Below, one piece after another: positions 6,401-64,000 of a DNA stretch of 64,000 nt; within the stretch, counting starts at the first letter, position 1, and the number at the start of each line of letters is the position of its first letter. The DNA is taken from contig NW_002060944.1 of assembly GCF_000150275.1 (NCBI RefSeq), positions 7,317,388 through 7,381,387 on the forward strand, written 5' to 3'. Made by a program: the position numbers and the translations under genes. Below the pieces are notes generated by a model. It did not search any database. It was not told the origin of the DNA and worked only from the letters and a program-made list of their open reading frames with translations. The DNA is from Trichoplax adhaerens. Its lineage: Eukaryota; Animalia; Placozoa.

Positions 6401-9400
6401 ACTGAATAACATACTAGAGATACCAGTATTAACCTCCATTTTCTTGCTAGCAGCACAAACACAGAGCGATTATACTTCAACGTCTGGCGTGATATCGAGA
6501 AGCCAAGTGGATAGTATTAGCACGCCGATCGACGATCAGCTTTCAATCGCAATCTATTGCCAATAGTTTGGATGGCCTGGCATCGAATCCACCAGAATCG
6601 ACTATAGCGGAAGATATTATTTCTACTGCGGTCTCAGATCTATTACAAACCTCCGTACAAGCTATCGTAACTAGTCTAGTTAACCAAGAATCTTCATCTC
6701 AACTTGATGTTACCGCGATATCCTTCCAGACACTTTCAGCGATAGAGAGTAACATTCCTTCTGATGCTGTCACGACTGCATTCACAACTTTAACCAATCA
6801 ATCGGAATCGACTGCAATAGATGGTATTGCCTCTACTGTCATTTCAGAAGATCTGCAGATTTTATCACTAGCCGCCACCACCGGGCCTATTGACCAAGTG
6901 CCTTCATCTCAGCTTGATCAAACCATTACATCATTTCAACTAATTTCACTGCTAGACAGTGAGACTGCTTCTGATAGTAATATCCCGGCTACATCAACAG
7001 GTTATAGTTCTATTTTTATGAACAAAATATCATACTACTATACATGTGCGGCATATCCAGTACTATAGGCGTACTTAAAGGATTGTAAAAGTCCATACTT
7101 GTATCGAAATGATGTACCTATTATGTATATGGATACAAATATATCGGGATTAATTAAAGTTATAAAATATGAAAAGATTATTTCTACCATTACATACTTT
7201 TGGAATTTACATTCCTACTGTTAGGATGCTAAATTTCCATTATACGCGGTCAATATCTTAATTTAAATATTTCATGTTGGTCTTACGTATATTTATAATG
7301 ACACTTTCTCCTTTCTTTATTTCAGTCGAATTATCTCAGCAGAGTTCATTTATTTTTGCAGCGGATACAACTATATCAATACTTGCAAGCATCTTTGATT
7401 CTTCGATAGGTAATGCTTTATAGTTTGATATACTTAAATTTTAACTTAACTCTTTCAATACAATAGATCATTAAAATTTTTAATTTTCTAATCAATTGTG
7501 TATTCAATAGGTGCTAGTCAAGGAAGCATCATATCTAACGTACCGAGTATTTTAGTGTCGTCTGTGGATGAAGATGAACTAATTTCTACGGTGGTATCGC
7601 TGGAGGCACAAAGCCAGAGTGATGTCGACGTCACTACAAATTTGCAACAAAGTTCTTCAGCAATATTGCAAGACTTGTCATCACAATTATCCATAGTTCC
7701 GCCAATATCTAGCGAGATTATATCCATAGCAGGTTAAAATAGACTCGTAATAGTTATAATAGGATTAGAAATATTACAGAAATTTGCGTGTTTATTTTAA
7801 AAAATTGATGTCTTCATTCATGGGCAATTATGCAAAGGAGGCTGCTTTAACCATATGCGGTACATATAATTGCTAAAATAATTTATGACACTTTATCATT
7901 TGCACTTTGTTATTAAAGATATAACTAGCCAAGAATCAAGCCAATCAACATTAATTGAGTCATCAATGATATCAGAATCAATAATTGCTACACCATCGTT
8001 ATTAGATGATTTACTAACATCGACAGCATTACCAACGGAAATAGAAAGTCAAAGCGAGATGGAAACAAGTACTACAGATGAGCGTAGTACACGTATAACA
8101 TCAGAAGATATACCGGCATCATCTTTGGACGATAGAGAAATAACAACGAGTGTTATAAAATCGACAGGTTAGAACAGATTTTATATATAACATATAATAG
8201 AAGTAAAAATCCGAATATCTTCATATAAATAAGAATTACATATAATAAAAATCTTTTAACGTTTTATTTTATGTAGACGATATTAGTAGTATAGCGACAT
8301 CGATAGAGAGAATATCGATTACACCATCATCTATCGATATTATTGATAGCTCTATCGCTTTCGATAGCAGTATACAATCACAAGCTATTAGCACAATAAT
8401 ATCAGAATCGATACTTGCAACGCCATCGTCGTTAGAAGACATACTAACATCGACAGTACTACCAAGAGAAATAGAAAGTCAAAGCGAGATAGAAACAAGT
8501 ACTACAGATGAGCGTAGTACGCGTATAGCATCAGACGATATACCGGTATCATCTTTAGACGATAGAGAAATAACAGCGAGCGTTATAGCATCGTCAGGTT
8601 AGAATATGTTGTAGATATATAGATATAGAAGTAAATATTCGACTGTAATAAATTTCCTAAATCTTTTATTTTATGTAGACGATATTAGTAGTATAGCGAC
8701 ATCGATAGAGAGAATATCGATTATACCATCATCTATCGATATTATTGATAGCTCTATCGCTTTCGATAGCAGTATACAATCACAAGCTATTAGCACAATA
8801 ATATCAGAATCGATACTTGCAACGCCATCGTCGTTAGAAGACATACTAACATCGACAGTACTACCAAGAGAAATAGAAAGTCAAAGTGAGATAGAAACAA
8901 GTGCTAGAGATGAGCGTAGTACACGTATAACATCAGACGATATACCGGTATCATCTTTAGACGATAGAGAAATAACAGCGAGCGTTATAGCATCGTCAGG
9001 TTAGAATATGTTGTGGATATATAGATATAGAAGTAAATATTCGACTGTAATAAATTTCCTAAATTTTTATTTTATATAGACGATATTAGCAGTATAGCGA
9101 CATCGATAGAGAGAATATCGATTATACCATCATCTATCGATATTATTGATAGCTCTATCGCTTTCGATAGCAGTATACAATCACAAGCTATTAGCACAAT
9201 AATATCAGAATCGATACTTGCAACGCCATCGTCGTTAGAAGACATACTAACATCGACAGTACTACCAAGAGAAATAGAAAGTCAAAGCGAGATAGAAACA
9301 AGTACTACAGATGAGCGTAGTACACGTATAACATCAGACGATATACCGGCATCATCTTTAGACGATAGAGAAATAACAGCGAGCGTTATAGCATCGTCAG

Positions 9401-12400
9401 GTTAGAATATGTTGTGGATATATAGATATAGAAGTAAGTATTCGACTGTAATAAATTTCCTAAATCTTTTATTTTATATAGACGATATTAGTAGTACAGC
9501 GACATCGATAGAGAGAATATCGATTATACCATCATCTATCGATATTATTGATAGCTCTATCGCTTTCGATAGCAGTATACAATCACAAGCTATTAGCACA
9601 ATAATATCAGAATCGATACTTGCAACGCCATCGTCGTTAGAAGACATACTAACATCGACAGTACTACCAAGAGAAATAGAAAGTCAAAGCGAGATAGAAA
9701 CAAGTACTACAGATGAGCGTAGTACACGTATAACATCAGACGATATACCGGTATCATCTTTAGACGATAGAGAAATAACAGCGAGCGTTATAGCATCGTC
9801 AGGTTAGAATATGTTGTGGATATATAGATACAGAAGTAAGTATTCGACTGTAATAAATTTTCTAAATCTTTATTTTATATAGACGATATTAGCAGTATAG
9901 CGACATCGATAGAGAGAATATCGATTATACCATCATCTATCGATATTATTGATAGCTCTATCGCTTTCGATAGCAGTATACAATCACAAGCTATTAGCAC
10001 AATAATATCAGAATCGATACTTGCAACGCCATCGTCGTTAGAAGACATACTAACATCGACAGTACTACCAAGAGAAATAGAAAGTCAAAGTGAGATAGAA
10101 ACAAGTACTACAGATGAGCGTAGTACACGTATAACATCAGACGATATACCGGTATCATCTTTAGACGATAGAGAAATAACAGCGAGCGTTATAGCATCGT
10201 CAGGTTAGAATATGTTGTGGATATATAGATATAGAAGTAAATATTCGACTGTAATAAATTTTCTTAATCTTTTGTTTTATATAGACGATATTGGCAGTAT
10301 AGCGACATCGATAGAGAGAATATCGATTATACCATCATCTATCGATATTATTGATAGCTCTATCGCTTTCGATAGCAGTATACAATCACAAGCTATTAGC
10401 ACAATAATATCAGAATCGATACTTGCAACGCCATCGTCGTTAGAAGACATACTAACATCGACAGTACTACCAAGAGAAATAGAAAGTCAAAGCGAGATAG
10501 AAACAAGTACTACAGATGAGCGTAGTACACGTATAACATCAGACGATATACCGGTATCATCTTTAGACGATAGAGAAATAACAGCGAGCGTTATAGCATC
10601 GTCAGGTTAGAATATGTTGTGGATATATAGATATAGAAGTAAATATTCGACTGTAATAAATTTTCTAAATCTTTTATTTTATATAGACGATATTAGTAGT
10701 ATAGCGACATCGATAGAGAGAATATCGATTATACCATCATCTATCGATATTATTGATAGCTCTATCGCTTTCGATAGCAGTATACAATCACAAGCTATTA
10801 GCACAATAATATCAGAATCGATACTTGCAACGCCATCGTCGTTAGAAGACATACTAACATCGACAGTACTACCAAGAGAAATAGAAAGTCAAAGCGAGAT
10901 AGAAACAAGTACTACAGATGAGCGTAGTACACGTATAACATCAGATGATATACCGGCATCATCTTTAGACGATAGAGAAATAACAGCGAGTGCTATAGCA
11001 TCGTCAGGTTAGGCTTACTTGTTCATGTATATGCATAGAAGTAAATATTCGACTGTAATAAATTTCCTAAATTTTTTATTTTATATAGACGATATTAGCA
11101 GTATAGCGACATCGATAGAGAGAATATCGATTATACCATCATCTATCGATATTATTGATAGCTCTATCGCTTTCGATAGCAGTATACAATCACAAGCTAT
11201 TAGCACAATAATATCAGAATCGATACTTGCAACGCCATCGTCGTTAGAAGACATACTAACATCGACAGTACTACCAAGAGAAATAGAAAGTCAAAGCGAG
11301 ATAGAAACAAGTACTACAGATGAGCGTAGTACACGTATAATATCAGACAATATACCGGTATCATCTTTAGACGATAGAGAAATAACAGCGAGCGTTATAG
11401 CATCGTCAGGTTAGAATATGTTGTAGATATATAGATATAGAAGTAAATATTCGACTGTAATAAATTTTCTAAATCTTTATTTTATATAGACGATATTAGT
11501 AGTATAGCGACATCGATAGAGAGAATATCGATTATACCATCATCTATCGATATTATTGATAGCTCTATCGCTTTTGATAGCAGTGCTTTCGAGTCTCCTA
11601 TTGTATCTGGCACTGCTATTGGTTTGTCCAAGTCAGTAGTCTTGCTAGGAGATTCATTGACTACGCTATCAGTTTCGGCCTATTCTTTGGCTTCTGTCAG
11701 TATTGATTCGGTAATAATTGAATCAAGTTCTACAAGTATTTCTACGCAATCTGATGTTGGAATAATAACTACTGCGACAACACAACCCGAATATTCAGTA
11801 ACTTCAAAACTAGCTACTTCGCATTTAGGAAGATCGTATAGCAGTAGTTTTGGTATTGAATTGCCGAGTACGATCAAGTCTATTATTTCGTCGGGTACAG
11901 ATATCATTTCGACTCCTTCTATTCAGCAGACCGATTATTTAGCAACTTTGTCGTCAGTTTTTACTTATCCATCGAATTCTGATGGCACCATTGAATCTTC
12001 TGCAGGAGCAGGTGTAGGTGTTATTTCGACTACATCTGCCCATCAATCCGAATTTTTATCAGTATTACAAACGTATTCTGCTTCTTTATCAACACGTATT
12101 AGTAGTTCCGCAGTTTTGGATTTGTCATTTACTAAATTTCCTGTGATATCTACTACTGATGGCTCCGTAACTGGGGTTACACTCTCTAAAAAAGGCTCGA
12201 TAGCTGTAACATCGGATTCATCACAGCAAACCAGTTACACAGAAATTTTACCCTCTAATTTTAACAGTTCTAGCTTAACTAGCGAGTTATTTGGTGTAAC
12301 CACTTCCTTGCAGCCAGGTACTATTAGCATTTTGGTCGAATCTACGCTGAAATCACAATATTCGACAACATCAGCATTTTACTCAGTTTATTCGCCAAGC

Positions 12401-15400
12401 GTTGATGGTAGTATAACAGTCGAAGGTTTACTAAGTTCTACGACATCTTCCGTATTGCCGAATTTCCATACAAGTACAATTGAATATGTTACATTATCAC
12501 AGTCACAGTCCTCTACTCTCTTAAATTTTGGCAGTAGTTCGCCAAGTATTGATTCATTAGGATCCGTTACAGCTGCTACAGCTTTACTCTCAAACTTAGA
12601 TTCAACTATATCTTTGCAGTCGTCAGAATATATGACAGCGTCGGCTTCGGTTCCTCTGATTTTATCTTCTACAGCTTTACTCTCAAACATAGATTCAACT
12701 GTATCTTTGCAGTCGTCAGAATATATGACGGCGTCCGCTTCGGTTCCTCTAATTTCATCTTCTACAGCTTTACTCTCAAACTTAGATTCAACTTTATCTT
12801 TGCAGTCGTCAGAATATATGACAGCGTCCGCTTCGGTTCCTCTGATTTTATCATCGTTGCGTAATACAATCGATTCTTCTGCGGTTGTTAATCTAGCTAG
12901 CTCGGTCAAATATACATCATCAGTTTTCGATGTAAGGTTAACTTCCTCTATGTATTCATCTGGTTACTCGACGACTAAAGTACCAATTGCCAGCTCTGGT
13001 AAAGTAGCAGCGATTGCATCTAATTATCTAACTGATAATATAACTTTCGTATAATTATTTTTTGTTAAAAGTTTTTAAACATATTTCTTGAAATCAGATA
13101 CGGTATTCTAGTTACTTATGATTCCATAAAATTCTTCTGCAACTCATATAGCCTCGATTGCTTCGATTGATTCGATTCCTGGAACCAGTTACCTTACGAG
13201 TAGCTCTGCAATGATTTCAACGCAAATACTAGAATCAGCGACAATTGTGCCATCAACCATATCAGAAGGTGTGTAACAGTATGACTATAACGATTTTAAA
13301 GTGTAGCCACGGATGCCGCTCTTTGCTTACAAAGAATTTATTTGATAATTGTTTAAATATTAAGTAACGATGAATAGTTTAATGATCATGCGTTCATCGA
13401 ATTTACAGCTATAGTAACTTCTTCAAAGTTACCTGGCGTTTATGATTGTTCCGTCGATATTAACTTATGCCACGTTAACGCAATCTGTACTAACACATCT
13501 GGGTTGTATAATTGTTTATGCGAATCTGGATTTACTGGAAATGGCACATATTGTACAGGTTTGAAAGCTATTTAAGCAGTTATAAAAGCTACGTTATAAT
13601 ATAGCAACATTTTAGTTTTATTAGTTAATATTGCAAATATTAAGTTTCAATTTCCTAATTGTGGATGAAAGTGAATGTAATGCCACTATATTCACGTTTA
13701 CGAGGGTCATTAGCGTTAATTATATATAATTTAAGTCGATGTTAACATTTAGCCTTTTATGCTTTCTATGCGTAGATATTAATGAGTGCTTAGATAACCT
13801 TGATAACTGTAGTACTAATGCTACGTGCATTAATACCAGTGGTTCATTTAACTGCTCGTGTAACCAAGGGTACCTAGGAGATGGAGTTACTTGCGTTGGT
13901 AAATTCTGATTGATTAGCCATTAATAAAATGATAATCAGAATGTAATTGAAGAAATTATTATCAATGAACATTGCTTATTGATAAGTGATTCTGTTGATA
14001 GATATAAATGAATGCCAAACTGGTACAGATCATTGTCATACCAACGCTTCATGTCAGAACACTATAGGATCCTATGCTTGTTTATGCAAAATAGGTTTTA
14101 CTGGCAATGGAATAACTTGCAATGGTATTTAATCATCTTTACTTTGTTACCAGTTGTGAAGCTTATAGTTTATTGGCAATGAGTTATGCAATATCATTAT
14201 TGATAGCTTTATTTTATGTAAAAGCTATAAATTATTCTTTTACATTTATAGATATTGATGAATGTTTAATGAATCAAAGCAATTGTCATAGTAAGGCCAA
14301 CTGCATAAATTCAATTGGTTCGTATGCATGCTCTTGCATAGTAGGATATACTGGTAATGGTCGAAATTGTCAAGGTAGTAATGAAATCGCAAGTTTATGA
14401 TTTCTGCTGATATTTAATGCATTAATAATTATATTGTTCTTAAAATCTATATCTAGATATCAATGAGTGCACCACCAATAATCAATGTCATAGTAATAGT
14501 ACCTGTAATAATACTATCGGTTCCTATACATGTTCATGTATGTCTGGATTTGAGGGCAATGGTACATACTGTCAAGGTACGTTCTTTGTTTCGATATCTA
14601 GTTGTAAAGCATCTATGAATTTATTCCCAACAATATTTGTACTTTTCATTTCTAGATATCGATGAATGCTCAACCAATCAGCATCAGTGTCATCATAACG
14701 CAACATGTATTAATCTTTATGGCTCATATGAGTGCAGTTGCTCTTCTGGATTTCTTGGTAATGGTAGGAGTTGTTCAGGTTAGTGACGGGGTGGCTTCTT
14801 TTGCTTTGGTGATTATACTTTCATAGATAATATTTCAGTAGTTTATAAGTACTGTTCATCAGCTTAAATTATTGCATCTAGATATCAACGAGTGCAACAG
14901 TGGACATACCTGTAGTCGATTAGCGACTTGCTATAATACCCCTGGATCTTATTATTGTGTTTGCAACTATGGTTTGCAAGGCAATGGATTTCAATGCGTT
15001 CAAGAAGGTAATCCCAATTTTACGTAATATCCCTGACTATTGGCCAGGTTTCCATTGATTACCACAGCACGCATTGAACCTCAATCGATGCTAAATATTT
15101 TAGCTACTAGGTTATATCCTTACGGAGCACAATTTGGGGATAGATCGTTTGGTAGAACGGATCAAGGCTATAGATATCTATATTTAAGGGAGCCGATTTC
15201 ATATATGCAAACATCATACAGAGGATTATACGTAAATAGACTGAATGATACTAATGATACTTCGTAGTAATACCAATCAAACTAACTTAGTTAAATTACT
15301 GTATGATTGTAATAATCACATAAATATATGTATTTCACGACTTCCAATTGCAATATTTCCTTTTGGTAATAATTAAAGTGTGTTGATTTAATACTCAGAT

Positions 15401-18400
15401 CTCTGTTGATGGAGTTATTTCGTTGGGATTTCCATATCCGGGCTTTACAACCCGTCCGTTTCCAAGGCCACTTAACCGTGCAATCATTGCACCATACTTT
15501 GCTGATTCCGATCTTCGAAGGCAAAGCGTATCTCATGTTTACTACCAGCAATACTTAAGCTACCAACAGACTCCAATATCAGATGAAATTCTCAGGAACG
15601 CTACTAATGATGTCAATCGATTTCAACAGCTAATGGCCAACGATACTAATAATGCCTTGTATGGTATATTTCGGAAAACGGTGAACAACTTTACGGCAAC
15701 TCATGTTGTTGTCATTACTTGGTACAAATTGGTCGCTTATCCATATTGGTATTACTGGAATCGCCTTCCTCGTGAGGTAAGCTCACTCTCTTAAGAATAG
15801 CGGGATACAGTAGTTACTTATTAAGGTTTTATCTTTAATAATTTATGAGGTAGTATCACTTTCAATAATTAATTATTGATTTTGTGGTCAATTTTGCCTC
15901 TTTTAGTTATTTATAGTGCAATAATTGCGGACATGGATAAATTGTAGCGTTTATATTATATATATATATATATATATTGTAGTTGCTAATTACCCCTTAC
16001 GATTTTCTGTATAGTATAACACGTTTCAATTGGTATTGATATCAAATGGAAAGAATCTCTTCAGTTTGTTTAATTATGAAATTAACGGTTTCAACTGGTG
16101 GAAAAGAACCCCATGGATTAGAGCACGTATCGGTTATTCTTATGGATTGGCACCTTATTATTACGAAATACCTTGGTCGCAAAGAAGAAATACAAAACTC
16201 CTCAGGATTGATCAATATCGAGGCAATACAGGAGAAATTGGCAAATGGGCTTTCCGAGTGGACGATCCCGATGTCCAACATGTTAATTACGCTACTCAGT
16301 GCAGTCGATGGTATAATGCGCAAGCATATTCTATTTACTATCGGCGATCATTACCAGCGTGTCCTTGCCGAGCAGCACAAGCTATTGCGGATCCCAGATT
16401 TAGATACAACCGAAGAACTGGTTGCGCTACATCTCGATTTTCTTTTCCAGGTTGGGGATGGCGGTGGACATGGCCGTCGAGGTATAGCAACTTGTGGTCG
16501 AGACCGCCAAGGGTAATTGTTTTTCAAAATTGAAGATGGAACAAAGAAGAGCGTACGCTTGCAAATGTCATTCATTAACTTTTTTAATTTGACTATATCC
16601 CAAATTAGGTCTGGCAACGCTGTTGTTATTCTACAAATAGAAATAGGGCAGGCGCATTAATACGTTCCTATCCGACGGGCAGCTCATTTGTTTATGTTAC
16701 GCGTTCCCTTCGGCTAGCTGATGAAGAAGCTTATAAAGCATGCTGTAAACTATCGCGTTTATGCAACCTGTATCAGAATAGAAGACCAATTGATACTTGT
16801 AGAAATTACAGGCCACCTCGTTGGTGTAAGTCTACTATTTACTGTACTATATATAGTGAAATATCTTCTCTCCAGTTGCTCATCAGTTCTTGATATGGAT
16901 ATATCATAGATTAATACGCCTCCAATTCACCTGTCTGTACTTATATTCTTAGAGGCAAATTTAGTTATAAAACTGTCCTTTTATCACTGATGTAATTTCT
17001 TAAATATATGTTATAGCGTGGATGTGGGGTGATCCACATATTCAAACACTAGATGGTAAATCATATACATTTAATGGCGTTGGAGAGTACACATTGTTAG
17101 AATCGGATAACAATTTCTTCACACTTCAAGGACGTACTAGAAGGCCTTACATTACGAATACGACGCAGTTGGCTAAAGGAAGTGTTTTTTCAGCTTTTGC
17201 TATGTCTAAAAATGATTCAGATACTGTTGAAGTAAAGCTAAATGCCATTACTAATACAGTTACAATCACTGTAAATAAAAATTCTACCTACAATGATACC
17301 CATCTCCTCAATGACACTGTGTTATCGTTCAACAATCTTGAAATATCCAAACAGGACACGAAATATTTAGTTTCATTTACATCTGGTATAACGGCGGAGA
17401 TTGAGATAGTAACTAAAACACTGGTCATTTCACTTGTAACTTCTCAATCAATATTTGGAATCACCAAAGGACTATTAGGAACTTTTAACGGCAATGTAAC
17501 AGATGATTTCTTGCGTCCTGATGGAACTTACCTCAACATTAATGCTACAGACCGAGAAATTTATCATCAATTTGGCCAGCTATGTAAGTCCATTAAATAT
17601 TTAAATCTCATATGCATATCTTTATTTTGCATAAAGGCTTTTCTGCAACCTATTGCAACGATATAATATAGTGATTCAATTATTTTGTATTCATGCCTCA
17701 TCTGGGAAGCTATTTTGCCTCGATCTATATGTAAATTTAACAAATTTTCAAGCCTATTATACTACTGTACTATAAGATGCAGATTACCCTTACATTCTAA
17801 ATCATATAGACTCAATTTGCACATAATAAGGTGGTTTTCGGAGTCTTTTCCATTAGTAACGCTATAATGCCCTACAACCTTACTTTCAGCTCTTATATGT
17901 AGAACAAATGTCTCTACAATCTAAGTGGGGAAGCAATCAATCTGAATAAGCAACAAGATAGTAAGATTTAACTTCGTAAAGTAGTCTTCCTCGTACACCT
18001 TAGCAATAACGAAAAGTAACTTTACTTACCGATATCCAAGCTCTTTATTAATAGCTACTGTATGAAGATTACATACATCCTCTTTAACCACGCCTTAATC
18101 CTTTTATGGTAGTTATACAGCATACACATTATCGTTAAATCGAAAATAAAATTGAAACACTCATACAATAGTAGTTACTTCGAAAAATTTTCCATGTTTT
18201 CCTTTTCTAGATAGGCTCTTCACCTAATTACGTACAGTATTACCTTTTCGCAAATAGCAGGGTCTTGCTATCAACAACATCAGTATGACTTTAATATACT
18301 TCTGGTATTAGAAAATGGTGTAGATATTCAGAATTTTTCAAGGTCCTATTTGGATGTAACTTTTTAGAGTAATTGGCATTTTATTATGACTATTTGCATT

Positions 18401-21400
18401 ATGTAATGTTATAATCCTGCCTCAAATTGTTATTACCCCTTGATATTTACATGTAGTTCCCTAGGATAAAGAATTGTCATCACCTGTTAATTTCAACATG
18501 AGTTCTAGTAGTAGACTGAACGTTCTCTTCATAAAAAATTGCGCCTAGTTATTATTATCAGTGATGCTTATACGGTAATAGCTCATTTATCTCGTTTTAA
18601 TTGGTCGTCCGACAAGGCAATACGCTACTTGCGGTTTTTTAACGAATTAAATTTTTATGGTATCTCTACCTATTTTTAGTATATTCGAAACTTGATGATT
18701 TACTGCATATTCTTCTATTATGCATGGTTTTATTCATCCATGCATTAGTTAAAGTTTAGAATCTTTTTTCACATACTCTTAATCATCAGGCTGTTAATGT
18801 TATCTAATAAGCCTCTCAACGTATGCCTTGAAACTAGTTATATTAGATCGATAATGCGATTTAATGTTGCTTTTTGTCATGCTTTGACTTTAGGGCAAAT
18901 AAATGCGAGCTCATCATTGTTTAGTTACTCTCCTGGTATGGGAACGGGCAACTACAGCGATCCATCTTTTATACCAAACTTTTCCAAGGATATTAACGTG
19001 ATATTCGAAAATAATACAGAGATTCGCGATCAAGCAATTCAATTATGTAAAGGTGACAGCGCTTGTCTCTTTGACGCTGCGGAAACTCTAAGTATTCCAG
19101 TCGCTGTTAGCGGTAAGAACATTTCACAAGCTATTGCGACCACTCAAGCTGATATAAGTAAGTCTTTATATGCCAATAGAAGATTTTTAATAATCACTTT
19201 TTGTCACTGCAATAAACGATATCAATTCAAATTTACAGTTGTTTTCCCGCCTACAATAACTGGTCAAAGTATTTTTAATGTTACCTATGGACAGACTTTT
19301 ACTACAACATTAAATGCTACTGATCCTAATGGCAAGGAAACATTAACGGTGACCTCGGTTAATTTACCCCTTGGTGCGTCAGTTGACAATCAAACAAATA
19401 CCTTTACTTGGGATGTTAGTACATACGAGAATTTGTCCTTCGAGTTTGCTGTTACCAATTCCAAAAATTTATCAGCTATTTTCAAACCATCTGTTGTTAT
19501 GTGCTATTGTGCCAATAACGGAACGTGTCAGTACGAGTAAGTTTTTGTGATAATCCCTTGAATAGATTGAACAATTGTTTCCCTTAATGAAATAACGAAT
19601 AAATATATCGATTAATTGCGGCATGAATATTGATTACAACAAGATTTAAGAATAAAGAATTATTAGGGAACGTCTAGTTTTACTGTTTTTAATATTTTTA
19701 TGGTACCGCAATATCTTGCTACTGCTAATTTGATGACTTTGACATTGACATACGGCTTTATAGCTAACGAAAGCATGAAATTAATATTAACGCCTTTTCT
19801 TTGCAATTTCCATTCTTGAAGCGTCGAGTTTGTAACTATAAATGATACAGGATATGCTGTATGCCAGTGTAGCGCAGGATGGGTTGGTACATTTTGTACT
19901 GAAAGACTAGATGAATGTGCTGGTAGTCCTTGTTATGAAAATGTGACCTGCACCCTGGTACCGGCGCCTGGTATCGGATTTACGTGCGGACCATGTCCTG
20001 GCGGTTTGCAAGGCGATGGAGAGAAATGTTTCGGTAAGTAAATATATACCGTAAGCTTACCTTTTAAATCACCTTATAACTTTTGGTTAATGTATCGTTA
20101 GATAATTGACGTAATGAAAATCATGTTAGGTCCTACTGAATTTTTGCTTTGTATATAGCTAACGGCATAAATTATATACAACTTCATGCCAGCTAATCTC
20201 AGCTATACTTTGCTATGATTTATGTGCTGTACTCATCAAGACATTAATGAATGCGAAACTGGAGACAATCTTTGCAACCAGACTTGCATTAATACGGTTG
20301 GTAATTATTCATGCCAATGTCAAGCAGGATTTGAACTTGATACAAACAATTTGGACTGTAAAGGTATTCATCAAGTAATATTTCGGTATCGACCCATCTA
20401 TTAAATATGCTTATTAGTGTGGTAGTCAGGCTCTCTATGATACTCCAGCTAGCTGTACTAACCTAAAATTCGTTGCATAAAACTTTGATGCTCTTTCGGT
20501 AAAACTTTAGGACTTAATAATATCTTTTGTTTTAATAGTTTGTATATCTAACTTTCTATCATCTAGATATTGATGAATGTGCCATCACTCAACGCTGTCA
20601 TCAAATCTGTATCAACGATTATGGTAGTTATAGTTGCGAATGCAGACCAGGATATACATTAAATAGCGATAATAAAACATGCTCACGTAAGTTATAGCTT
20701 TCGTAAATCGATTAGGTACTTATTTATATGATAAGATTTTTATTTTTTTGCTCTTTAGCCATTGTAACATGCAATTCTACCGCAAGCAATTGCACACAGT
20801 TATGCGCTGTAATCAACAATACGATTACTTGTAGTTGCAATCTTGGATATAGCTTAGCCGCAGATCAAGTCACCTGCATAGGTATCAAAATATGCATGAT
20901 ATTTTAAAGCATAGAGTTTATAACAGTAAGAAAATTAGATCATTTAATTAATCTTTTCTCAACATTCGTGATGCAAGATGAAAATGAATGTGAGAACAAC
21001 CCTACAATTTGTGCAGATAATTGTACTAATACAGAAGGTAGCTACTACTGTAGCTGCCGCACTGGCTATCAACTTAACACTGATAGGAGAACTTGTCGAG
21101 GTAATGAACAGCAATAAGAATATTTTTAGTTCTGACGTTACGTGCAGGTTACGAAAAGATCTGACGTAACAAGACACTGCGGTACTGCTTAACATCGAGC
21201 ATGATGTAATTCTTATCATTTTGATTATTGCTTGGCAATATTTCAGATATCGATGAATGTAGCAATAGTGGATTATGTCCGAGCAATTCCATCTGTGTTA
21301 ATAGCCTCGGCTCTTTCAGCTGTGATTGTGTCGAAGGTTTTATTGCTACTGGAGGAATTTGTCAAGGTAGAATTAGGATTTGGTTAACATTTCGTACCGT

Positions 21401-24400
21401 CAAATTGACAAATTGCGTATTTCGATAAAATCTTCATGAAATTGATTTGGGCTTCACTTGATTGTAGATATCGATGAATGTATCCGTCCCGATCTTAATC
21501 TTTGCAGTCGTAATGCAATATGTGTAAATTTTGCTGGTAGTTACAATTGTTTGTGCGATAGTGGTTTTCAGGGAAATGGTATCATTTGTGCAGGTTTTAA
21601 TAACAGTGATTTTATATCTGTTCTAGTTTTTTAACGAAACTGCGAATTGAGCAATGCTTTTTAATTTTCTTCCGTTACTCTATAAAGATATCAATGAGTG
21701 CAATAACGCTAACATATGTGCAAAAGAAACTACTTGTAATAACCTCGTTGGTAGTTACCAATGTATTTGTAACAACGGATATACTGGAAATGGAACTGTT
21801 TGTACCGGTAATTTTATTGCTCGATGTCGATATTATTTTTACTCCATAAAATAGCCTTCATTAAGTTAATAGGTTACTGCAAGAGTCTGGTTCTTATCTC
21901 TAATTCTAAATTTATCGATGACGGATTTATTAGATATCAATGAATGCGATAATTCGTCAAGTTGCAGAAAGGAGGAAATTTGTCACAATACTCTGGGTAG
22001 CTATTACTGCACTTGTAAAAAAGGCTTTTATACAAAACGAAGCCCAAATGCTACCACAACAAGTTGTCAAGGTAATTAAAATTTAAAATAGTTGAAAGCG
22101 CTAAGCTATTGCTACATTTATGAAGTATATGAAATGTTGAGAAATGCATCTTTTGCAAAGGAACTAATTACAATCCCATGATTTCTACAGTAAATTACGG
22201 TCAACTTCGATATATTAATTTTGGCATCAATCAGATACTTTTAAGATGAAATATATAATTAGTGAAGATAAATACGAAAAATTAGAGGCGTTAATTTCGT
22301 TATTTGTTTCGTTTTGTTGTATGTAGCACGAATATCTTAGTTTCACCGTATGTTGTAACATCGAATATATACAGGCATACTTAAAAGTTTTCGGCGCAGG
22401 CGCTCATAGTGGACGTATAAACTTAGCATTTTCTGCGATTTTACGTATAATAAAATCATAGGTCTAATAAAGTAATCTGTAATCATTAAAACTTTGGCTA
22501 AATGTATTTCCTTTTCGCTAATAATTGCAATACTGATAGGGTCACGTGCCCAACTACATTATACTGTTTGTAGACTTAATAAATCAAAGAAAGTAGAGTG
22601 AATTCTGCAATGATATCATATATATTAGGATAGTAATGTAAAGCCACTGAGCGCACTTTTGCATAGGCTTGAGTATTTACGGATCTTTTCTCGACTTAGA
22701 AATCCGGTAAAATTAATAGGATACTAACGATAGTGATAATAATCGCTAATTAGGAATAAAATTATGCTTAGCATAAGTGCAAGCGCGAATAAATTTGGAT
22801 TTTTTTATCTCAATACCTAAAACTTAAAATTCCCTTATTAGCTGGCTTATACTACACTGGATTAATCATACTTAATGGTACGTTTACAACTGACCTGAAC
22901 AATCCCCTCAGTCAGGCATATTTATCATTAACATCCGAAGCTTATTCCAAGGTAAAAACTTATGATTAAATATTACCTTCAAGAGGTCATTTTTACAAAT
23001 ATTAAGCGGTGCTTCATAACTACCATTGACATTTTCAAATCGGTAAATTAATTCTTGATGTTTTGCGTAGGTGAATGCAGCCTTAATGGTAGACGTTAGA
23101 ACACAGTATGCGGTTCAGCAAGTCACAATTGTTAATTTGAGGTAAAACTATTTATATGGTCAACTTAGCTGTATAATTACTATTTTATGATACAAATACT
23201 TATCTAAGAATTGTTTTATAGTTAGCAAGTATGTAAGAATTTATAATAAATATCATAACACTTCAAAATTTCTCTTACCATTTATCCAGGCTAGGAAACG
23301 GAACCATACTTATCGATCTTTCTGTGACGCTATTACAAAATTCTACGTTTGTGACGCTGCAATTATTAGATGTTATCACTGGTCAGAGCGTCAAGCAAAT
23401 TCGCAGCTATCCTGTTCAATCAATTATTTTTCAAGGTATTCTATTAAAATGAATTTAAATTAATATACAAAATTTATTTTTATCGAAGTTACATAAATTA
23501 CACATCTATGTGAATCCGTATTAACCGGAGAATATAGAGTTCGATCTATTTTTTTTATAAAGTAGATCGATAGTTTGTGGATTCTACAGTAACAGGTTTA
23601 GACGAATTTTAATTGTCGATTACGAATAACGTGGTTTTCTTCGTACTTTGTACTTCTACAGGATATGTCTAAGATACTTAATACACTCTATAGTGTAAAT
23701 GCTTGCATATACTTATATTCACACAGATACGTAATCTGTACTAGGAAAAATAATAGTAAATTCAATCAGACCACCCTGAGCTTTTATAGTATAGTAGACA
23801 ATCATTCAATAGTTGTAAAGCATCACGGTAACACCGTTTATCTTCCTTTATTCATATGACATAAAAATTTAAGTAATTAAAAATTAATTAAATTTATCAA
23901 AACCATAGGTATGTAAATCGTACTCTACGATGTATACCTATCGTCCATAACTCTAACAATCTTGATCGTACTTCATATGGTATACTGTTCAATAAAGGAT
24001 AGAATAATCTGCTGGTATATGGCTGTAGTGTATTAAGACATACAGTTTTACACTACATACTATCACTGTATTGCATACACAAAACTACTGTAATTAGCTG
24101 AAATCACTACAATGGTGCTACTCATTTTGCAATAGTAGCTAGTAGATATGAGGCTTACAATAATTTACTTCCAATACTAGCGATGGACATGAATACTAAG
24201 CTCAACATGACAGTACTTTTGTAAAATAAAAACCAATTTTTCGATTAAAAAAACTGAGCGACGTCGACTTAATTATTGGAATAAAAATTCATTTCTATAG
24301 ATTACAATCAATGCGCTGATCCGCAGGCCAATTCATGTTCCAATCTACAAAACTGCACTCAAAAGCGCGGCTCATTCGAATGTCATTGTATTTCTGGCTA

Positions 24401-48500: not shown

Positions 48501-50912
48501 ATTTCGTTCAATGATTAAAATTATAACATGATATTACCAATATCATAAGATTTCTATTTATTTAAAATTTTAAGTGCTTTATGTATTTAGATACAGTATT
48601 TTACTTGCATATTCGTATACACTTGTATTTGAAATATCATGGGTGAATACGATATTTGTAAACTTTTCTTGCCCTTTTAAACAAGAATAATTACATTGTT
48701 CTAAGATTACGACATGTACCTTAAAAATTTTTTAATAAGTATTGTCAAGATGATAGCAATCAACTTAGATAATGAAGTTTAATAAATAATAGTTTAATAT
48801 TCCTATCGATTTTAATTTTATTTGTTTTATATAGCTTATTTGCATATAAAATATTATATATATTATACGCATATATAGTTCTGGCTATGTTGTCTATAAA
48901 TTCAAATAAGAATAATTAATCACATTTTGGCTACAGTGTGCATCTAAAAATCCTTATACTCTTATGGGTACGATAGATGATAATAAATAACTTAACCGGG
49001 AGATAACACTTTTAGAAAAAAAAAAATACCGTTGCTATACAGTATAATAAATGATTAACATACTATAAATTTCATTGTTACGCAGAATACTGGTAAGATC
49101 TAAGATAGTTCAAATGAAAAACAGTTATATGATTCTGCTTTTCCCCATAGATTATGACCAATGCGCCGATCCTCAAGCCAATTCTTGTTCCAAATTGCAA
49201 AATTGTACGAAAAAACCAGGGACATATGGGTGCACTTGTATTAATGGCTATCAACTAGACTTACAAAGCAACAATTGCCAAGGTAAGTTTAAAGGAGATC
49301 ATATTGTGTATGCCTATTAGATCATTCCTGTAACACTATTGAATGAAAACGCTATTATTTATTCTATGCTTACTGTTATACACTATTTAGATATCGATGA
49401 ATGCTTGGTTCCATCTAGATGTGCAAACAATAGTATTTGCATAAATGAACCAGGAGGATTTCAGTGCCAGTGCTTAGACGGATATAGTGGTAATGGCCTA
49501 ACTGAATGTAGATGTAAGTCTTGCTCCAAATACATAGTTTAGTCAATACAAGATGATTCTAATGTGTAATTCAATTAATGGTAGCAAATAAAGTAGCTTA
49601 TTTCCACTACACTTCATATTTGATTTCAATTCCTTGATACTTGAATATAAATTTTACTAACGTAGAGGTGACATCATTAATTCTAAATTATAGCATTATG
49701 TTCAAGTAATCTATGTAAAAACGGTGGAACATGTTTTTACTCTAATGGCACCTCTCTTTGCAAGTTAGTTAATTATTTTAAGTTTGTTATCATCTCTACA
49801 TTATTGCACTTTCTCCTCGCCATCATAACCTGAGATCGACTAATTATAGTAATCATGATGTGATCTATTGACAGTTGTTCAGCCGGATTTGATGGCCAAT
49901 ATTGCGAAAGCACAAGTGTACTCAGTGAGTATTAATAAATCTTGCAATAATAAGCAAGATTTGTCCTTGTCTCCTAATATCAATTAAGAATATGAAGGAA
50001 ATATTTTAAAATGGATGATCTAAAATGTGCTTTTACATTTTATTATGCATATGACTCTTCTATCAATTGAACAGCTATACCAACACTTGGAATTGCTTTC
50101 GGTATAGCTGGGGGAGTTTTGATATTGATTTTAACTCTAATCGGCGTATTTGTCTTTTATCATCGCAATAAAAAGTATGTAGCCTATGTCTGATCAATAA
50201 TAAGACTTATATTTTAGGTCGTATTGTATTTCTATTTTTTGATTAAATCACCTGTTGACATCCGGGTTTAGTTATAAGGTGATAAATGATAGAAGTACGG
50301 TAGTCTTTCTCGCTTTTGTAAATTTTAAATGTTAATTGCTTAGCAAGGGTAAGTAATATCATATGCGTAGAAACGTAGGAAAGAGATATATAGTTTAATT
50401 ATTTGAACTTTTAACTAGTTTATTCGACAATAACGCATATTATGATCACACTAAATGTTACTACTGCCTATAAGTTTTAAGCGTCAAGGCGAGTTATCTT
50501 AACTGTGTTCCCTTTGTGAAATGCAGTATATTTTAAGGCTCGTATATCTGATAATTTATAAAAAGAATTTACGAATTTTTGACAAAAATTTTTCAATAGG
50601 GCAAGAAGTAAAGCAGAATGTGGAAAAAATAGTGGCAATGCCTCAATTGCTTCCAGTGCTTCGAGTAATAGTGATGTAGATGATCCAACCCAACATCATG
50701 GACAACACCAATCACAAAGAATTGAGAGTGTTATATCTTTATTTTCTGAGAAGCGCTATCGAAGTAGCTATTATCAAGGAATTAGATCAGACGAACAAAG
50801 TAGTACTGATAGGACAAAAAGAAAAGTTCCCAAAGCAGAGAATATAGATTTAGTAAAAAATTCAAAGAAAAAAGGTGTAAAGGAGAAGCTACAACGAGTG
50901 AACAGAAACTAA
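30436..50912 (+). CDS. Gene B: multi-exon MUC4-like transmembrane mucin, paralog of gene A, with 15 N-terminal EGF domains
   Basis: Exons 30436-30532, 30866-30931, 32137-32451, repeat exons 32648-35874, about 36160-37214, 37345-37503, EGF 37617-40996, NIDO/AMOP 41098-43325, VWD 43456-44022, 44343-44606, 44719-45016, EGF 45200-47623, SEA 47999-48498, EGF from 49151, TM 50075-50174, last exon 50600-50912 (TAA). Confidence 0.9.
31836..32000 (+). pseudogene. Possible decayed mucin exon (pseudo-exon) inside gene B
   Basis: After TTTTAAG| it reads [40 protein letters not shown], resembling gene C exon 60237 (HIVPAS...QVSVSVGSED); stop codon and no good phase-1 donor. Confidence 0.4.
32648..35874 (+). 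repeat. Gene B exon-intron tandem array: 7 units of about 495 nt (336-nt exon, 158-159-nt intron)
   Basis: Exons 32648-32971, 33131-33466, 33625-33960, 34120-34422, 34570-34905, 35065-35400 and 35560-35874 (TATAG|CTTACGACGAC ... TCGACAG|GTTAG), encoding [20 protein letters not shown]...SMLSSTG. Older diverged copy at 32137-32451. Confidence 0.97.
37880..40015 (+). repeat. Gene B tandem array of ten similar 123-nt cbEGF exons (period about 220 nt)
   Basis: Exon starts 37880, 38099, 38321, 38533, 38752, 38971, 39191, 39419, 39673 and 39893; consensus [41 protein letters not shown]. Confidence 0.96.
41098..43325 (+). CDS. Gene B NIDO and AMOP domain exons
   Basis: Exons 41098-41225, 41660-42037, 42525-43022 and 43109-43325; same lengths and motifs as gene A. 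Confidence 0.9.
43456..45016 (+). CDS. Gene B VWD domain (GDPH at 43467-43478) and following segments
   Basis: [22 protein letters not shown]...[21 protein letters not shown]. Confidence 0.92.
47999..48498 (+). CDS. Gene B SEA domain (3 exons) with GSIVI motif
   Basis: [28 protein letters not shown]...IITNVR|[12 protein letters not shown]. Confidence 0.8.
50075..50174 (+). CDS. Gene B transmembrane exon
   Basis: [25 protein letters not shown] followed by HRNKK. Confidence 0.9.
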
Positions 50913-58600: not shown

Positions 58601-61600
58601 CATTGAAGGCTAAAATTTTAGCTTTACCGCAATTAAAGTAGAAATATCAGGATATAATTGTATTTTACAACAGCAAATACTGCCAAAGGTCTAAAATTCT
58701 AGAATTACTTCAGCAGTATATGATGATCATATTTGAATGAAAATCATAGAAGGATATATATAGCCATCATCGCTGGGTTCTTAGTACAAGTGCTGTCAAC
58801 ACTTTTTTTTGTAAAAACGAACGGGTATTGAGTGCAACTTCACCGGCTTCAGACCTCAAATTCTATCTCTCTGCAGGACGAACCTTACAGTTTTAAATTG
58901 GTACCTGCAAAAATGTTTAATGCTCTTTTTCATTTATTGAAAGCTGTAAGTTGTCGCTTTACCTACGGTAAAAATTCTATGCAAGACTAAATACGTAGAT
59001 TAATTAGAATTATCGAAGGATGTCATGCATACAGTCTTAAATTTAATAAGGGAATTGAAATATTACAGAAATTTCACTGGCAGTATTTAAAAAATTATTT
59101 TAGAATTACTGAAGGCTAAAATTTTGATTTTACCGTAACTAACTCTTGTAGAAATAGGAGGATATAATTCTATCATGTAAGATGAAAATACTATCTCTTG
59201 CGCACGCATATATCCAACAACTCACAAGAAGTGACACTATTACCATATCATAGCGTAACATACAACACTATCAAAGATAAAATTCTAGAATTACCTTAGC
59301 AGTATATGTATGAAGATCATTTTTAATGTAGAATCATGGAAGACTGTCCATCCATCATCGCTTTGGGTGGGTCCGTAGAGCACATGCTGTAACAATTGTT
59401 TTAGTAATTATGTGAAAGTAAAATTTTTTGTAAGTCTTCCTTGATAAAACTAAAATTTTATAAAATTACAGTGACAGGATTTCAATGTCATTTTACATGA
59501 TTAAAGGCTATGAGTTTTTGCGGATCAATTCGATTAGATGGACTAACCTTGTTTTACCAGGCTTCAACCTGACATAGCTCGGGAACGGTATCGCGGTCGT
59601 GCCGAGACTTAATCGGGGATCAATTTGATATCACGTTTTGCTTCGCTGTCTGTTCGAAAGCATTTTATAATACAGTACTCTAAAATGGTCGCTATTGTCT
59701 AGCCTAGAGAGTTTAGGGTCTCTAGACTAACCGATACTCGTTTTTCATAAAATTAACCCAGAATTAAAGTAAATAGTTTGCAAATTTTAATTCATTTTAT
59801 ACTAATTTGCAATATTATACTATTGAAATACGTACACTTATGTATTCTATTCACTGCACTTGAAAGGAAATTAGGGATTATTTTTCCGTTAAAGGATGCA
59901 TATCTTGAAAGTTGAAACTAAATATTCTAAGAAATAAATTTAAAGTTTATGAAGGAGCAGACCTTGTCTGTCCTTGCTCAGTTTGTACAGCTTTTATTCT
60001 AATTATCGAATAGGCATCACTACGTCATAAATTCGGCCGTGTGCACTGCGTAGTACTTGTCCTACAGAGCAAACGGTAGTTAAATGTTGAGCGTTCGTAC
60101 CCGTATAGCAGAACGTTGAAAGTTTTGCCGTTTATAATTGCAGTATAAGCGCTTACGTATCCCAAGTTTTGTTATATTAAATTGATAGTTAAACTATTCA
60201 AAGCATAATATGTTTTGCATGGCTTTCCTGTCCTAGAAGACGTTAATGAATCATTATTAACAGAACACATAGTGCCAGCATCGCTCAACAATACCCAGGA
60301 TCACATTACTACTGATGGGGTAACAGCTTCATCATCGGTGCAAGTGTTAAATTTAGAACATACGCAGGTATCAGTATCTGTAGGAAGTGAAGACCAATTT
60401 GGTACAGATAGCATATTGAATTCGAAATCACAATTACAGCCCATCTCAAGTGAGACTATATTGGCCTTCGAAGATGACACCATCGGAATTAACCATTTAT
60501 CTTCACAGTACTGGAAATACACAATCTGTGCAACCGACAGCCTCATCATTGCATTTATCTAACGAACTGGAAAGTAGTCACCAAATAGCAGCAACTGATG
60601 AACAGTCTAACATCGATTATACGACTTCGCTTCTAGCTGATCAATTACATTCAAATGCTCCTACGTATGGTAACATAGATAATCCGATCACTGCTGGTAT
60701 TTTATCATCCGGAGATGAAACTAGGCTTACAGGTAGCCATTATAAGCAATTAACAAAATCTCAATTTTTGTCATCAGTACATTATGTTAAAATTTCTACA
60801 TTTTCTGATCATATCGATTCTAATTTCATCTGCATGTCTTCAGATAAAGTTTTAATCTCTATGAAAGAGTCACCACAATGGACTACGCAAAATATCCTGT
60901 ACACACCGAAAGCATCGATAATTCCTGAGAGTGATATCACAGTAGATAAAACAAGCCAAGACGATAATTTGCAAGAATTAAGAAGTACGACTACGAAAGT
61001 AATATCTAACGTTAACATAGATTTAAGTAGCATGCTTCAAAACGAAGAACAGGAAGAATCTGCGAGTACACTACAATCAGCAATAGATAATTTCGTAGTT
61101 TCATCGCCTGTTAATAATATCGAATCAAATTCTATCGATATTATATCAGATAAAATTTCAATTTATTCTGATGGATTATCACAAACGAATACACATAACA
61201 TCATGTATACACCGGAAGCATCGATACAAACAGAGAGCAACATAATAGCAGATATAACAAGTCAAGACGAAAACTTACAAGAAACACGAAGTACAACACT
61301 AATATCTGACGTCAATATAGAACTAAGTAGTACAATTGGAAAAGAAGAAGAAAAAGAATCGACTAATATCGACAACATTATATCTGCAACAGGTAATAAA
61401 GTATCGACTATAATAATAAGTACACATAATTAAGTTATACTACTGCATATAAAGTACTTGTAATCATACAACTATTATGCTTATAGTTACTGTAATAGAC
61501 ATATAATAAAATTTATGTATATAGTGTATATAGTATTAAAGACACTATTCAATATTGCAATAACTAATTAAACTCAGAATAGATTACATACTTAAGATAT

Positions 61601-64000
61601 ACGTGCTATAAATATATTACATACTATAGACATACAAGAACCAAGTAAAGATCAATCGATATTACATACGCTACAATCAACAATAGATAATTTCGAAGTT
61701 TCATCGCCTGTTAATAATATCGAATCTAGTTCTATCGATATCATATCAGATAAAGTTTCAATTTATTCTGACGGATTATCACAAACGAATACACAAAACA
61801 TCATGTATACACCGGAAGCATCGATACAAACAGAGAGCAATATAATAGCAGACATAACAAGTCAAGACGAGAACATACAAGAAACACAAAGTGCAGTACT
61901 AATATCTGACGTCGATATAGAACTAAGTAGTACAATTGGAAACGAAGAAGAAGATAAACAATCGACTAATATCGACAACATTATATCTGCAACAGGTAAT
62001 AAAGTATCGACTATAATAATAAGTACACACAATTAAGTTATACTACTATATATATATGCTAACATGCACTATACAGTACTCGTAATTACACAATTATTTA
62101 TTGTATTTATAGTTACTGTAGTAGTAGACATATAGTAAAATTTATACATAGTGTATATAGTATTAAAGACACTATTCAATATTGCAATAACTAATTAAAC
62201 TCAGAATAGATTGCATACTTAAGATATACGTTCTATATTACATACTATAGACATACAAGAACCAAGTAAAGATCAATCGATATTACATACACTACAATCA
62301 ACAACAGATAATTTCGAAGTTTCATCGCCTGTTAATAATATCGGATCTAATTCTGTCGATGTTATATCAGATAAGATTTCAATTTATTCTGACGGATTAT
62401 CACAAACGACTACACAAAACATCATGTATACACCGGAAGCATCGATACAAACAGAGAGCGACATAATAGCAGATATAACAAGTCAAGACGAAAACTTACA
62501 AGAAACACGAAGTACAACACTAATATCTGACGTCGATATAGAACTAAGTAGTACAATTGGAAACGAAGAAGAAGATAAAGAATCGACTAATATCGACAAC
62601 ATTATATCTGCAACAGGTAATAAAGTATCGACTATAATATTAAGTACATGCAGTTAAATCATACTACTGTATATACAGTACTCGTAATTACACAATTATT
62701 TATTACATTTATAGCTACTGTAGTAGACATATAATACAATTCATGTATACTGTATATATTATTAAAGACACTATTCAATATTGCAATAACTAATTAAACT
62801 CAGAATAGATTACATACTTAAGATATACGTTCTATATTACATACTATAGGCATACAAGAATCAAGTAAAGATCAATCGATATTACATACACTACAATCAA
62901 CAATAGATAATTTCGAAGTTTCATCGCCTGTTAATAATATCGAATCTAATTCTATCGATATTATATCAGATAAAATTTCAATTTATTCTGATGGATTATC
63001 ACAAACGAATACACATAACATCATGTATACACCGGAAGCATCGATACAAACAGAGAGCGACATAATAGCAGATATAACAAGTCAAGACGAAAACTTACAA
63101 GAAACACGAAGTACAACACTAATATCTGACGTCGATATAGAACTAAGTAGTACAATTGGAAAAGAAGAAGAAAAAGAATCGACTAATATCAACAACATTA
63201 TATCTGCAACAGGTAATAAAGTATCGACTATAATAATAAGTAGTACACACAATTAAGTTATACTACTGTATATACAGTACTCGTAATTACACAATTATCC
63301 ATTATATTTATAGTTAGAACTTAGAAGACATAAAAGTAAAATATATACATAGTATATATATAGTATTAAGGGCAGTATTCAATATTGCAATAACTAATTA
63401 AACTCAGAATAGATTACATACTTAAGATATACGTACTATATTACTTACTGTATACAAGAACCAAGTAAAGATCAATCGATATTACATACACTACAATCAA
63501 CAATAGATAATTTCGAAGTTTCATCGCCTGTTAATAATATCGAATCTAATTCTATCGATATCATATCAGATAAAGTTTCAATTTATTCTGACGGATTATC
63601 ACAAACGAATACACAAAACATCATGTATACACCGGAAGCATCGATACAAACAGAAAGCGACATAATAGCAGATATAACAAGTCAAGACGAGAACTTACAA
63701 GAAACACGAAGTGTAGTACTAATATCTGACGTCGATATAAAACTAAGTAGTACAATTGGAAACGAAGAAGAAGATAAAGAATCGACTAATATCGACAACA
63801 TTATATCTGCAACAGGTAATAAAGTATCGACTATAATAATAAGTACACACAATTAAGTTATACTACTATATATATATGCTAACATACAATATACAGTACT
63901 CGTAATTACACAATTATTTATTATATTTATAGCTACTGTAGTAGACATATAGTAAAATTTTTACATAGTGTATATAGTATTAAAGACAGTATCAATATGC
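55665..64000 (+). CDS. Gene C (5' part only): third mucin paralog, signal peptide plus acidic S/T-rich exons; continues beyond the window
   Basis: 97-nt first exon 55665-55761 MKKRKIGNLTYNLSRLLLSYLLILNWKYAHTL(G), ending CTAG|GTAAG; small phase-1 exons 56656-56697 and 56941-57012 (72 nt, like 6222-6293); large exon 60237-61392 with a frame switch near 60463; then repeat exons. Downstream domains are not visible, so family assignment rests on the shared 5' exon structure. Confidence 0.75.
57611..58102. repeat. Intronic direct duplication, 2 x about 230-265 nt
   Basis: CCTTAGTAAT...ATACCCTGTTATAAAAT...TTTTACGAAACTTTCTAT...AATCTTCGACTGACT...CCTAGATTAGGCCRCACTTA starting at about 57611 and 57876. 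Confidence 0.9.
58340..59362. repeat. Older intronic direct duplication, 2 x about 430-490 nt
   Basis: Shared blocks GACGAACC, ATTTATTGAAA, CAGAAATTTCACTGGC, TGAAGGCTAAAATTTT, AAAATTCTAGAATTAC and CCATCATCGCT occur in the same order from about 58340 and 58878. Confidence 0.8.
61070..64000 (+). repeat. Gene C exon-intron tandem array, unit about 600-620 nt (363-366-nt exon), at least 4 full units plus the 3' end of the preceding exon
   Basis: Exons 61630-61995, 62251-62616, 62850-63212 and about 63459-63815 (DIQEPSKDQSILHTLQS...IDNIISATG; GCAACAG|GTAAT); runs off the window end. Confidence 0.95.

Follow-up and report, generated by a model that had tools for sequence, protein, structure and literature searches.

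A 64,000-nucleotide stretch of the genome of the placozoan Trichoplax adhaerens (the window; C1413:7317388-7381387 of a 105.6 Mb assembly in 1414 contigs, which was also the scope of the genome scans) appears to contain three tandem paralogs, gene A, gene B, and the front part of gene C, whose sequences suggest MUC4-like type I membrane glycoproteins. Each of them carries an array in which the tandemly repeated unit, referred to here as a cassette, is one symmetric phase-1 exon, apparently coding, together with its intron. This arrangement in three neighboring paralogs had been proposed from the letters of the window alone (the original prediction), and it was borne out by Tandem Repeats Finder (TRF), a repeat search, and the exon tables. 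Collectively, these observations are likely to be best explained by MUC4-like paralogs in which a serine/threonine-rich (Ser/Thr-rich) stalk was lengthened by exon-plus-intron duplication. The window is AT-rich (G+C of approximately 32%), and its introns are short, at approximately 80-250 nt. Positions are those of the window unless a contig is named.

The cassette arrays and their coding signs

Array A was delimited by TRF at 8262-11584 (period 402, 8.3 copies, 97% matches) and consists of eight exons of 321 nt (107 codons) each, with 80-81 nt of intron between neighboring exons. Of a ninth copy, only the first 95 nt of the cassette are present (11490-11584), and these are joined to the large exon that ends at 13051. 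The intron that precedes the last full cassette (11008-11088) is distinct from the other seven introns at numerous positions, with no such difference in the exons flanking it. Array B, found by TRF at 32653-35835 (period 495, 6.5 copies, 93% matches), consists of seven exons of varying length, which are listed in order in the table, with introns of 147-159 nt. The array borders originally placed at 8277, 32648, and 35874 proved to be exact.

Array C was found by repeat search from 61032 to the end of the window, with a period of approximately 600 and 5 copies. A run of N of 11.3 kb begins at the first base past the window (extended coordinates 64001-75347, equivalent to C1413:7381388-7392734), and the array resumes beyond it at 75419-77768 with four further exons of 366, 366, 360, and 366 nt. 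The cassette exons of array C thus number nine or more: eight are separate and one copy lies inside a large exon; this count is a lower bound since the run of N interrupts the array. The first approximately 35 nt of the array C exons are without a counterpart in the older copies within that large exon (60420-61392), which suggests that the acceptor side of the C cassette was created at the junction of the first duplication. In one C cassette (63459-63815), a small deletion (63448-63459) has removed the canonical acceptor AG. Use of another AG, in frame and 9 nt further in, would give an exon of 357 nt; judging from these letters, either this downstream AG must be used or the cassette must be skipped.

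Several signs indicate that the cassette exons are coding. First, all 22 delimited array exons are a multiple of three in length, are open in one frame, have phase 1 at both ends, and lie between introns with AG/GT borders; lengths in multiples of three and flanking phase-1 introns had been predicted for every array exon. Their length variants are all in frame (321 nt in array A; 303, 315, 324, and 336 nt in array B; 357, 360, 363, and 366 nt in array C); the lengths of the array introns differ by 1, 2, 11-12, and 20-22 nt. For every donor, an in-frame stop codon is found at the donor itself or 14 codons beyond it, and translation of the cassettes would therefore need splicing. Second, divergence in the introns exceeds that in the exons by a factor of 1.5 to 6 across the three arrays, the mean pairwise diversity of intron versus exon being 0.075 versus 0.013 in array A, 0.027 versus 0.018 in array B, and 0.126 versus 0.046 in array C. 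The claim that introns are homogenized nearly as tightly as exons thus holds roughly for array B and fails for arrays A and C. The ratio of nonsynonymous to synonymous substitution rates (dN/dS) is 0.2-0.8, both among the copies and in comparison with older copies.

Third, the A and B cassettes can be aligned over their full length as proteins with 38% identity, with a DNA identity of 51% and a saturated synonymous divergence (dS of 1.35). The older diverged copy that lies 5' of each array can be aligned along its whole length as well, and in all of these the donor has the same position and phase despite the saturation of synonymous sites. Fourth, arrays A and C run directly into long open Ser/Thr-rich exons with the frame kept. 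The cassette splice sites also resemble the 33 sites of exons that encode epidermal growth factor-like (EGF) modules in genes A and B, where the donor consensus is AAG/GTAA (the slash marks the splice site) and CAG/GTTAG is present as well. The donors of the A and B cassettes read GTTAGA, with a T at position +3 that is common to only 3 of the 33 EGF donors in the same genes. These observations suggest that the mature mRNA includes the cassettes.

The cassettes contain 26-39% Ser+Thr, 14-18% Asp+Glu, 1-4% aromatic residues, 1-4% Pro, and no Cys. When the A, B, and C cassettes were searched against Pfam, no family was found; the sole match, to ISP_coupler (E = 0.008), was under the cut-off and at chance level. 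A folded cassette domain was considered as a candidate and set aside, as AlphaFold2 returned a mean predicted local distance difference test score (pLDDT) of 49 and a predicted template modeling score (pTM) of 0.12. This result, obtained on an alignment of 11 rows, gives no support for a fold, and an alignment so shallow does not prove disorder either. The composition is that of what is probably an acidic, disordered, O-glycosylated stalk, and the cassette region may accordingly serve as an extended spacer in the glycocalyx.

Layout of the MUC4-like genes

The genes share a common order of parts, in which a Ser/Thr-rich region is followed by EGF exons, NIDO, a putative AMOP, VWD with a GDPH motif, C8-3, further EGF exons, a transmembrane (TM) helix, and a tail. 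The mucin-like identity suggested by the original prediction was upheld by the Pfam matches to NIDO, AMOP (a marginal match), VWD, and C8-3 and by the GDPH motif, EGF exons, TM helix, and tail. Genes A and B are colinear, with 66-80% nucleotide identity across conserved exons and 73-79% across the NIDO, AMOP, and VWD exons. Gene C, which extends past the end of the window, matches gene A in colinear order with 65-72% identity (NIDO/AMOP, VWD, and later exons). By tblastx, the 5' regions of the three genes showed no homology to each other.

All protein and domain searches were run single exon by single exon. NIDO (PF06119; cut-off 25) was matched in gene A with 38.1 and 31.8 bits and in gene B with 26.7 bits. 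AMOP (PF03782) reached 25.1 bits in gene A, a marginal score against a cut-off of 25, and a sub-threshold 22.7 bits in gene B, both from single-exon queries of an intron-split domain; the match covers only the first 40-45 of the 143 profile positions. The gene A exon that follows the AMOP-matching exon (16609-16890) matched no Pfam family when queried alone. VWD (PF00094) was matched with 64.5 bits in gene A and 65 bits in gene B, and the GDPH autocleavage motif, read from the translation, opens both VWD domains. The C8-3_MUC4 module (PF23263) scored 25.9 bits in gene A against a cut-off of 25. Matches to He_PIG and Big_9 in the same stretch of gene A (18797-19537) were under their cut-offs.

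Calcium-binding EGF exons occur in long runs on both sides of the NIDO-AMOP-VWD core, as seen from the open reading frame (ORF) map and a motif scan; in genes A and B, 33 such exons were examined, all of them phase 1-1. A hydropathy scan found one hydrophobic TM helix of 20 residues, followed by basic residues, in each of genes A, B, and C. A SEA domain was set aside for an unassigned stretch of gene A at 22793-23449 that resembled one by eye, as neither Pfam scans of the exons nor a genome-wide SEA scan supported it.

Two further repeats were observed in these genes. The large Ser/Thr-rich exon of gene A contains a 93 bp repeat in three copies at 12576-12852, with 94% identity. Gene A thus has both styles of repeat, namely exon-plus-intron cassettes and a repeat within an exon. 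In gene B, an exon and its intron form the repeat unit of a second array as well, located at 37868-40042 (period of 219-220 bp with 75-87% matches); it consists of approximately 10 calcium-binding EGF modules, each in a phase 1-1 exon of 123 nt with an intron of approximately 96 nt. The assembly gap between genes A and B disrupts no array and no reading frame.

Features of the window with their positions, strand, and basis or remarks
Gene	Feature	Position	Strand	Basis or remarks
A	Older diverged cassette-exon copy, just 5' of array A	7919-8167	+	Phase 1 at both ends; 65% protein identity to A cassette; 85% DNA match; donor CAG/GTTAGA
A	Array A exons	8277-8597, 8679-8999, 9080-9400, 9482-9802, 9883-10203, 10285-10605, 10687-11007, 11089-11409	+	AG/GT borders, multiple of 3, no stops
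A	Large Ser/Thr-rich exon	11490-13051	+	38% Ser+Thr; partial ninth cassette fused at front
A	Calcium-binding EGF exons, one module per exon	13378-15024	+	All phase 1-1; ORF map, splice table
A	NIDO and AMOP (marginal) exons	15387-16890	+	Pfam
A	VWD exon	17004-17663	+	Pfam; GDPH at 17028-17039, motif from translation
A	MUC4-type C8-3 module and Ig-like stretch	18797-19537	+	PF23263
A	Second set of EGF exons	19820-25047	+	
A	TM helix (25144-25203), cytoplasmic tail exon, stop (25880-25882)	25144-25882	+	Hydropathy scan, translation
	N gap, intergenic between A and B	26726-27200	.	844 nt past gene A stop codon; >4 kb before first recognizable gene B exon
B	Older diverged cassette copy 5' of array B	32148-32451	+	First recognizable gene B exon; 44% protein identity to B cassette; donor CAG/GTTAGA
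B	Array B exons	32648-32971 (324 nt), 33131-33466 (336 nt), 33625-33960 (336 nt), 34120-34422 (303 nt), 34570-34905 (336 nt), 35065-35400 (336 nt), 35560-35874 (315 nt)	+	
B	Large Ser/Thr-rich exon	36159-37231	+	38% Ser+Thr
B	EGF exon block	37586-41025	+	TRF, splice table
B	NIDO, AMOP (sub-threshold), and VWD exons	41642-44036	+	Pfam, colinearity with A; GDPH at 43467-43478
B	TM helix (50098-50157), cytoplasmic tail exon with stop	50098-50912	+	Hydropathy scan, translation
C	Large exon with two older repeat copies, no intron between	60420-61392	+	Second copy (61067-61392) is first unit of array C
C	Array C within the window	61630-64000	+	Exons 61630-61995 (366 nt), 62251-62616 (366 nt), 62850-63212 (363 nt), 63459-63815 (357 nt); introns 233-255 nt

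Origin of the arrays and competing explanations

The copies within each array are 88-99% identical; the flanking genes are only 65-80% identical. The DNA of each cassette matches its own array only, with no match between arrays and no copies on other scaffolds, and each array is thus private to its gene. Therefore, the expansion or the homogenization of the arrays came after the gene duplication. The original prediction held that the paralogs had amplified their repeats independently. The private, post-duplication state of the arrays agrees with this, but the sequences cannot separate independent amplification from concerted evolution.

In the mechanism that we propose, the Ser/Thr-rich region of each gene would have grown through tandem duplication of a segment made up of one whole exon and one intron, with unequal crossing-over between copies as the most likely driver. 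The A and B cassettes would derive from a single ancestral cassette that was already flanked by phase-1 introns, and each paralog would have amplified, or gone on homogenizing, its own version of the cassette after the genes had diverged. Any number of cassette copies keeps the reading frame, because the length of the exon is divisible by three and the introns on both sides are in phase 1. Each cassette gained or lost would thus change the length of the protein by 107 residues in A, 112 in B, and 122 in C. Change of length in whole-cassette steps by unequal crossing-over is a sound inference, and cassette copy number may be expected to vary between individuals.

Several results weigh against the proposal that these genes encode mucin-like proteins with stalks built from cassettes. 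The cassettes are proline-poor and, with Ser+Thr at no more than the fraction given above, fall short of the classical composition of mucin proline-threonine-serine (PTS) domains. Among the copies, variation is spread about evenly over the three codon positions, and the constraint on the amino acid sequence of the cassettes is for this reason weak, as is expected for a low-complexity spacer. A scan for signal peptides found hydrophobic start candidates (e.g., at 5601 and 31240), none of which could be linked to the genes. The copy numbers all come from one assembly, and this assembly failed inside array C. Protein word searches with the A cassette and with the 520-aa large exon gave no match, and a HMMER search with the A cassette against 1.84 billion representative proteins was blank; these two results carry little weight either way. 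The word, HMMER, and metagenome searches found no cassette in any transcript, expressed sequence tag (EST), or annotated protein, which is uninformative on expression; the metagenome scan, for a 26-nt cassette word, gave no match. A control word search with the conserved NIDO-AMOP exon was also blank, its reach being limited to proteins of 95-301 aa. Because even this conserved control exon was blank, the blank cassette searches are not evidence on expression or relatives.

The lack of any protein or transcript match for a cassette and the about equal variability of the codon positions would also be seen if the arrays were noncoding, that is, if they were young repeats within a long intron whose pseudo-exons are fully spliced out and whose open frames are left over from one duplicated exon. 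Copies as young as these (88-99% identical to the query unit) could keep an open frame by chance for a while. However, chance would not readily account for exon length variants that are all in frame next to intron indels that are not multiples of three, for intron divergence that exceeds exon divergence in all three arrays, for a frame and splice positions that are kept from A to B and in the older copies with synonymous sites saturated, or for the continuation of arrays A and C in frame into long open Ser/Thr-rich exons. We consider a noncoding origin of the arrays very improbable. Misassembly, in which the copy numbers or entire arrays were put together wrongly from a shorter repeat, is suggested by the 11.3-kb run of N at which the assembly breaks within array C and by the large runs of N that lie 5' of NIDO exons in paralogs on another scaffold. 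Yet private substitutions and indels mark each unit in the three arrays, no stray copies are present on unplaced scaffolds, and the ends of the arrays grade cleanly into unique sequence. The copy number could still contain errors, but an assembly artefact is an unlikely source of the architecture as such; misassembly as the explanation appears very improbable.

A further possibility accepts the cassettes as coding and assigns them a role in regulation. In this proposal, which formed part of the original prediction, regulated skipping would pick subsets of cassettes and set the length of the stalk for each cell or state. With all cassettes in phase 1-1 and a multiple of three in length, any subset would be frame-safe; the A and B donors with a T at +3 may be weaker sites, as so few EGF donors are alike; and one C cassette is without a canonical acceptor. 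However, all 33 of the EGF exons looked at in genes A and B are equally phase 1-1, and gene B even has an array of EGF exons with their introns. Frame-safe skipping is for this reason a generic feature of these genes and points to no dedicated device. Long-read transcripts of DMBT1, the analogue that has been studied best, mostly track genomic copy number, with minor alternative splicing (PMC9038570), and alternative splicing of the repeat exons of MUC16 was judged unlikely (PMC3431878). Tuning by splicing would be possible in principle but is unlikely. The stronger version, in which the cassette arrays would act as a splicing-controlled ruler for the height of the surface glycoprotein layer, with the GTTAGA donors and the acceptor-less C cassette as parts of the tuning, is doubtful to the same degree. 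Lengthening of the stalks by exon-plus-intron duplication is the reading that we prefer.

Relation to known repeat proteins and to the NIDO family

Compared to vertebrate MUC4 and the cnidarian mucin4-like proteins, the Trichoplax genes share a Ser/Thr-rich region at the N-terminus, NIDO, VWD with GDPH, C8-3, EGF modules, a single TM helix, and a short tail, together with a putative AMOP. In human MUC4, a repeat of 16 residues lies within one giant exon. The Trichoplax unit, unlike that of MUC4, is an exon of 107-122 residues with its own intron, and the cassettes are proline-poor and acidic. Furthermore, many more EGF modules are found here than in MUC4, including a block between the Ser/Thr-rich region and NIDO. 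The arrays also resemble the symmetric phase 1-1 modules of extracellular proteins, which can be duplicated, lost, or skipped without a frameshift, and we see no difference from these in principle. Such modules are associated with exon shuffling and tandem exon duplication, and kringle IV-2 of LPA is another example. Exon-phase symmetry has been linked with disordered regions as a general pattern (PMC3632108), and cnidarian mucin4-like proteins with the same NIDO-AMOP-VWD core have been published (PMC9080433).

The original prediction set the arrays against membrane mucins known for repeats within a single exon. This contrast was incomplete, as the repeats of MUC16 and DMBT1 are also spread over exons. 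In MUC16 (CA125), each repeat of 156 residues is encoded by five exons in approximately 1.9 kb (PMC3431878). Genes A-C resemble MUC16 in that a membrane mucin has a tandem repeat spread over exons and introns in many copies; the MUC16 unit, however, is a folded SEA module of five exons, whereas the Trichoplax unit is one exon and is probably disordered. DMBT1 (gp340, salivary agglutinin) has been termed a "mucin hybrid" glycoprotein. Its tandem SRCR domains are interspersed with Ser/Thr-rich SRCR-interspersed domains (SIDs), and an allele may have 7-21 SRCR domains owing to copy-number variation of the SRCR exons (PMC9038570 for both statements and the term). Exon-borne tandem repeats and Ser/Thr-rich stretches are common to DMBT1 and the Trichoplax genes. 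In contrast to the cassettes, the DMBT1 unit holds a cysteine-rich folded domain together with a Ser/Thr spacer, and DMBT1, unlike genes A-C, is without the NIDO-AMOP-VWD core. The features of the exon-plus-intron tandem arrays of the MUC16, DMBT1, and LPA type, namely a unit with a complete exon and intron and frame-preserving phases, are present here. Exon-plus-intron duplication as a route to such proteins is already known, and the architecture is not new. A literature search for Trichoplax with MUC4, NIDO, AMOP, or mucin found no paper on these genes.

A scan of the genome with the NIDO profile found matches in genes A, B, and C (that in gene A at C1413:7332783-7333650) and approximately 15-20 related genes. 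One NIDO paralog (C1414:1258684-1260279, minus strand) contains a Ser/Thr/Tyr repeat with a unit of 111 bp (37 residues), all within one open frame of 532 codons. Because this repeat lies in a single open frame, the family appears to build repeats in both ways, within an exon and as exon plus intron. Runs of N of 2.2-9.5 kb lie 5' of the NIDO exons in neighbors of the C1414 paralog, which suggests further unassembled repeats there. NIDO was also found together with a Pfam-supported SEA domain in nearly intron-free frames of 1,500-1,800 codons (C1412:3927622-3993456, C1406:13268-17503, and C1409:4291645-4296144), genes that the intron-rich genes A-C do not resemble.

Genes A-C provide a clean, young, and threefold case in which a mucin-like stalk would have grown by exon-plus-intron duplication in an early-branching animal. 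The MUC4 core, comprising NIDO, a partial AMOP match, VWD with GDPH, EGF modules, and a TM helix, represents a multigene family in Trichoplax. The locus is suited to asking whether it is the genome or splicing that sets the number of repeat exons. No protein of the searched libraries matched the Ser/Thr-rich front ends of these genes, and current gene models may therefore be missing these parts; such gaps, if true, would matter for cataloguing the surface and mucus proteins of placozoans.

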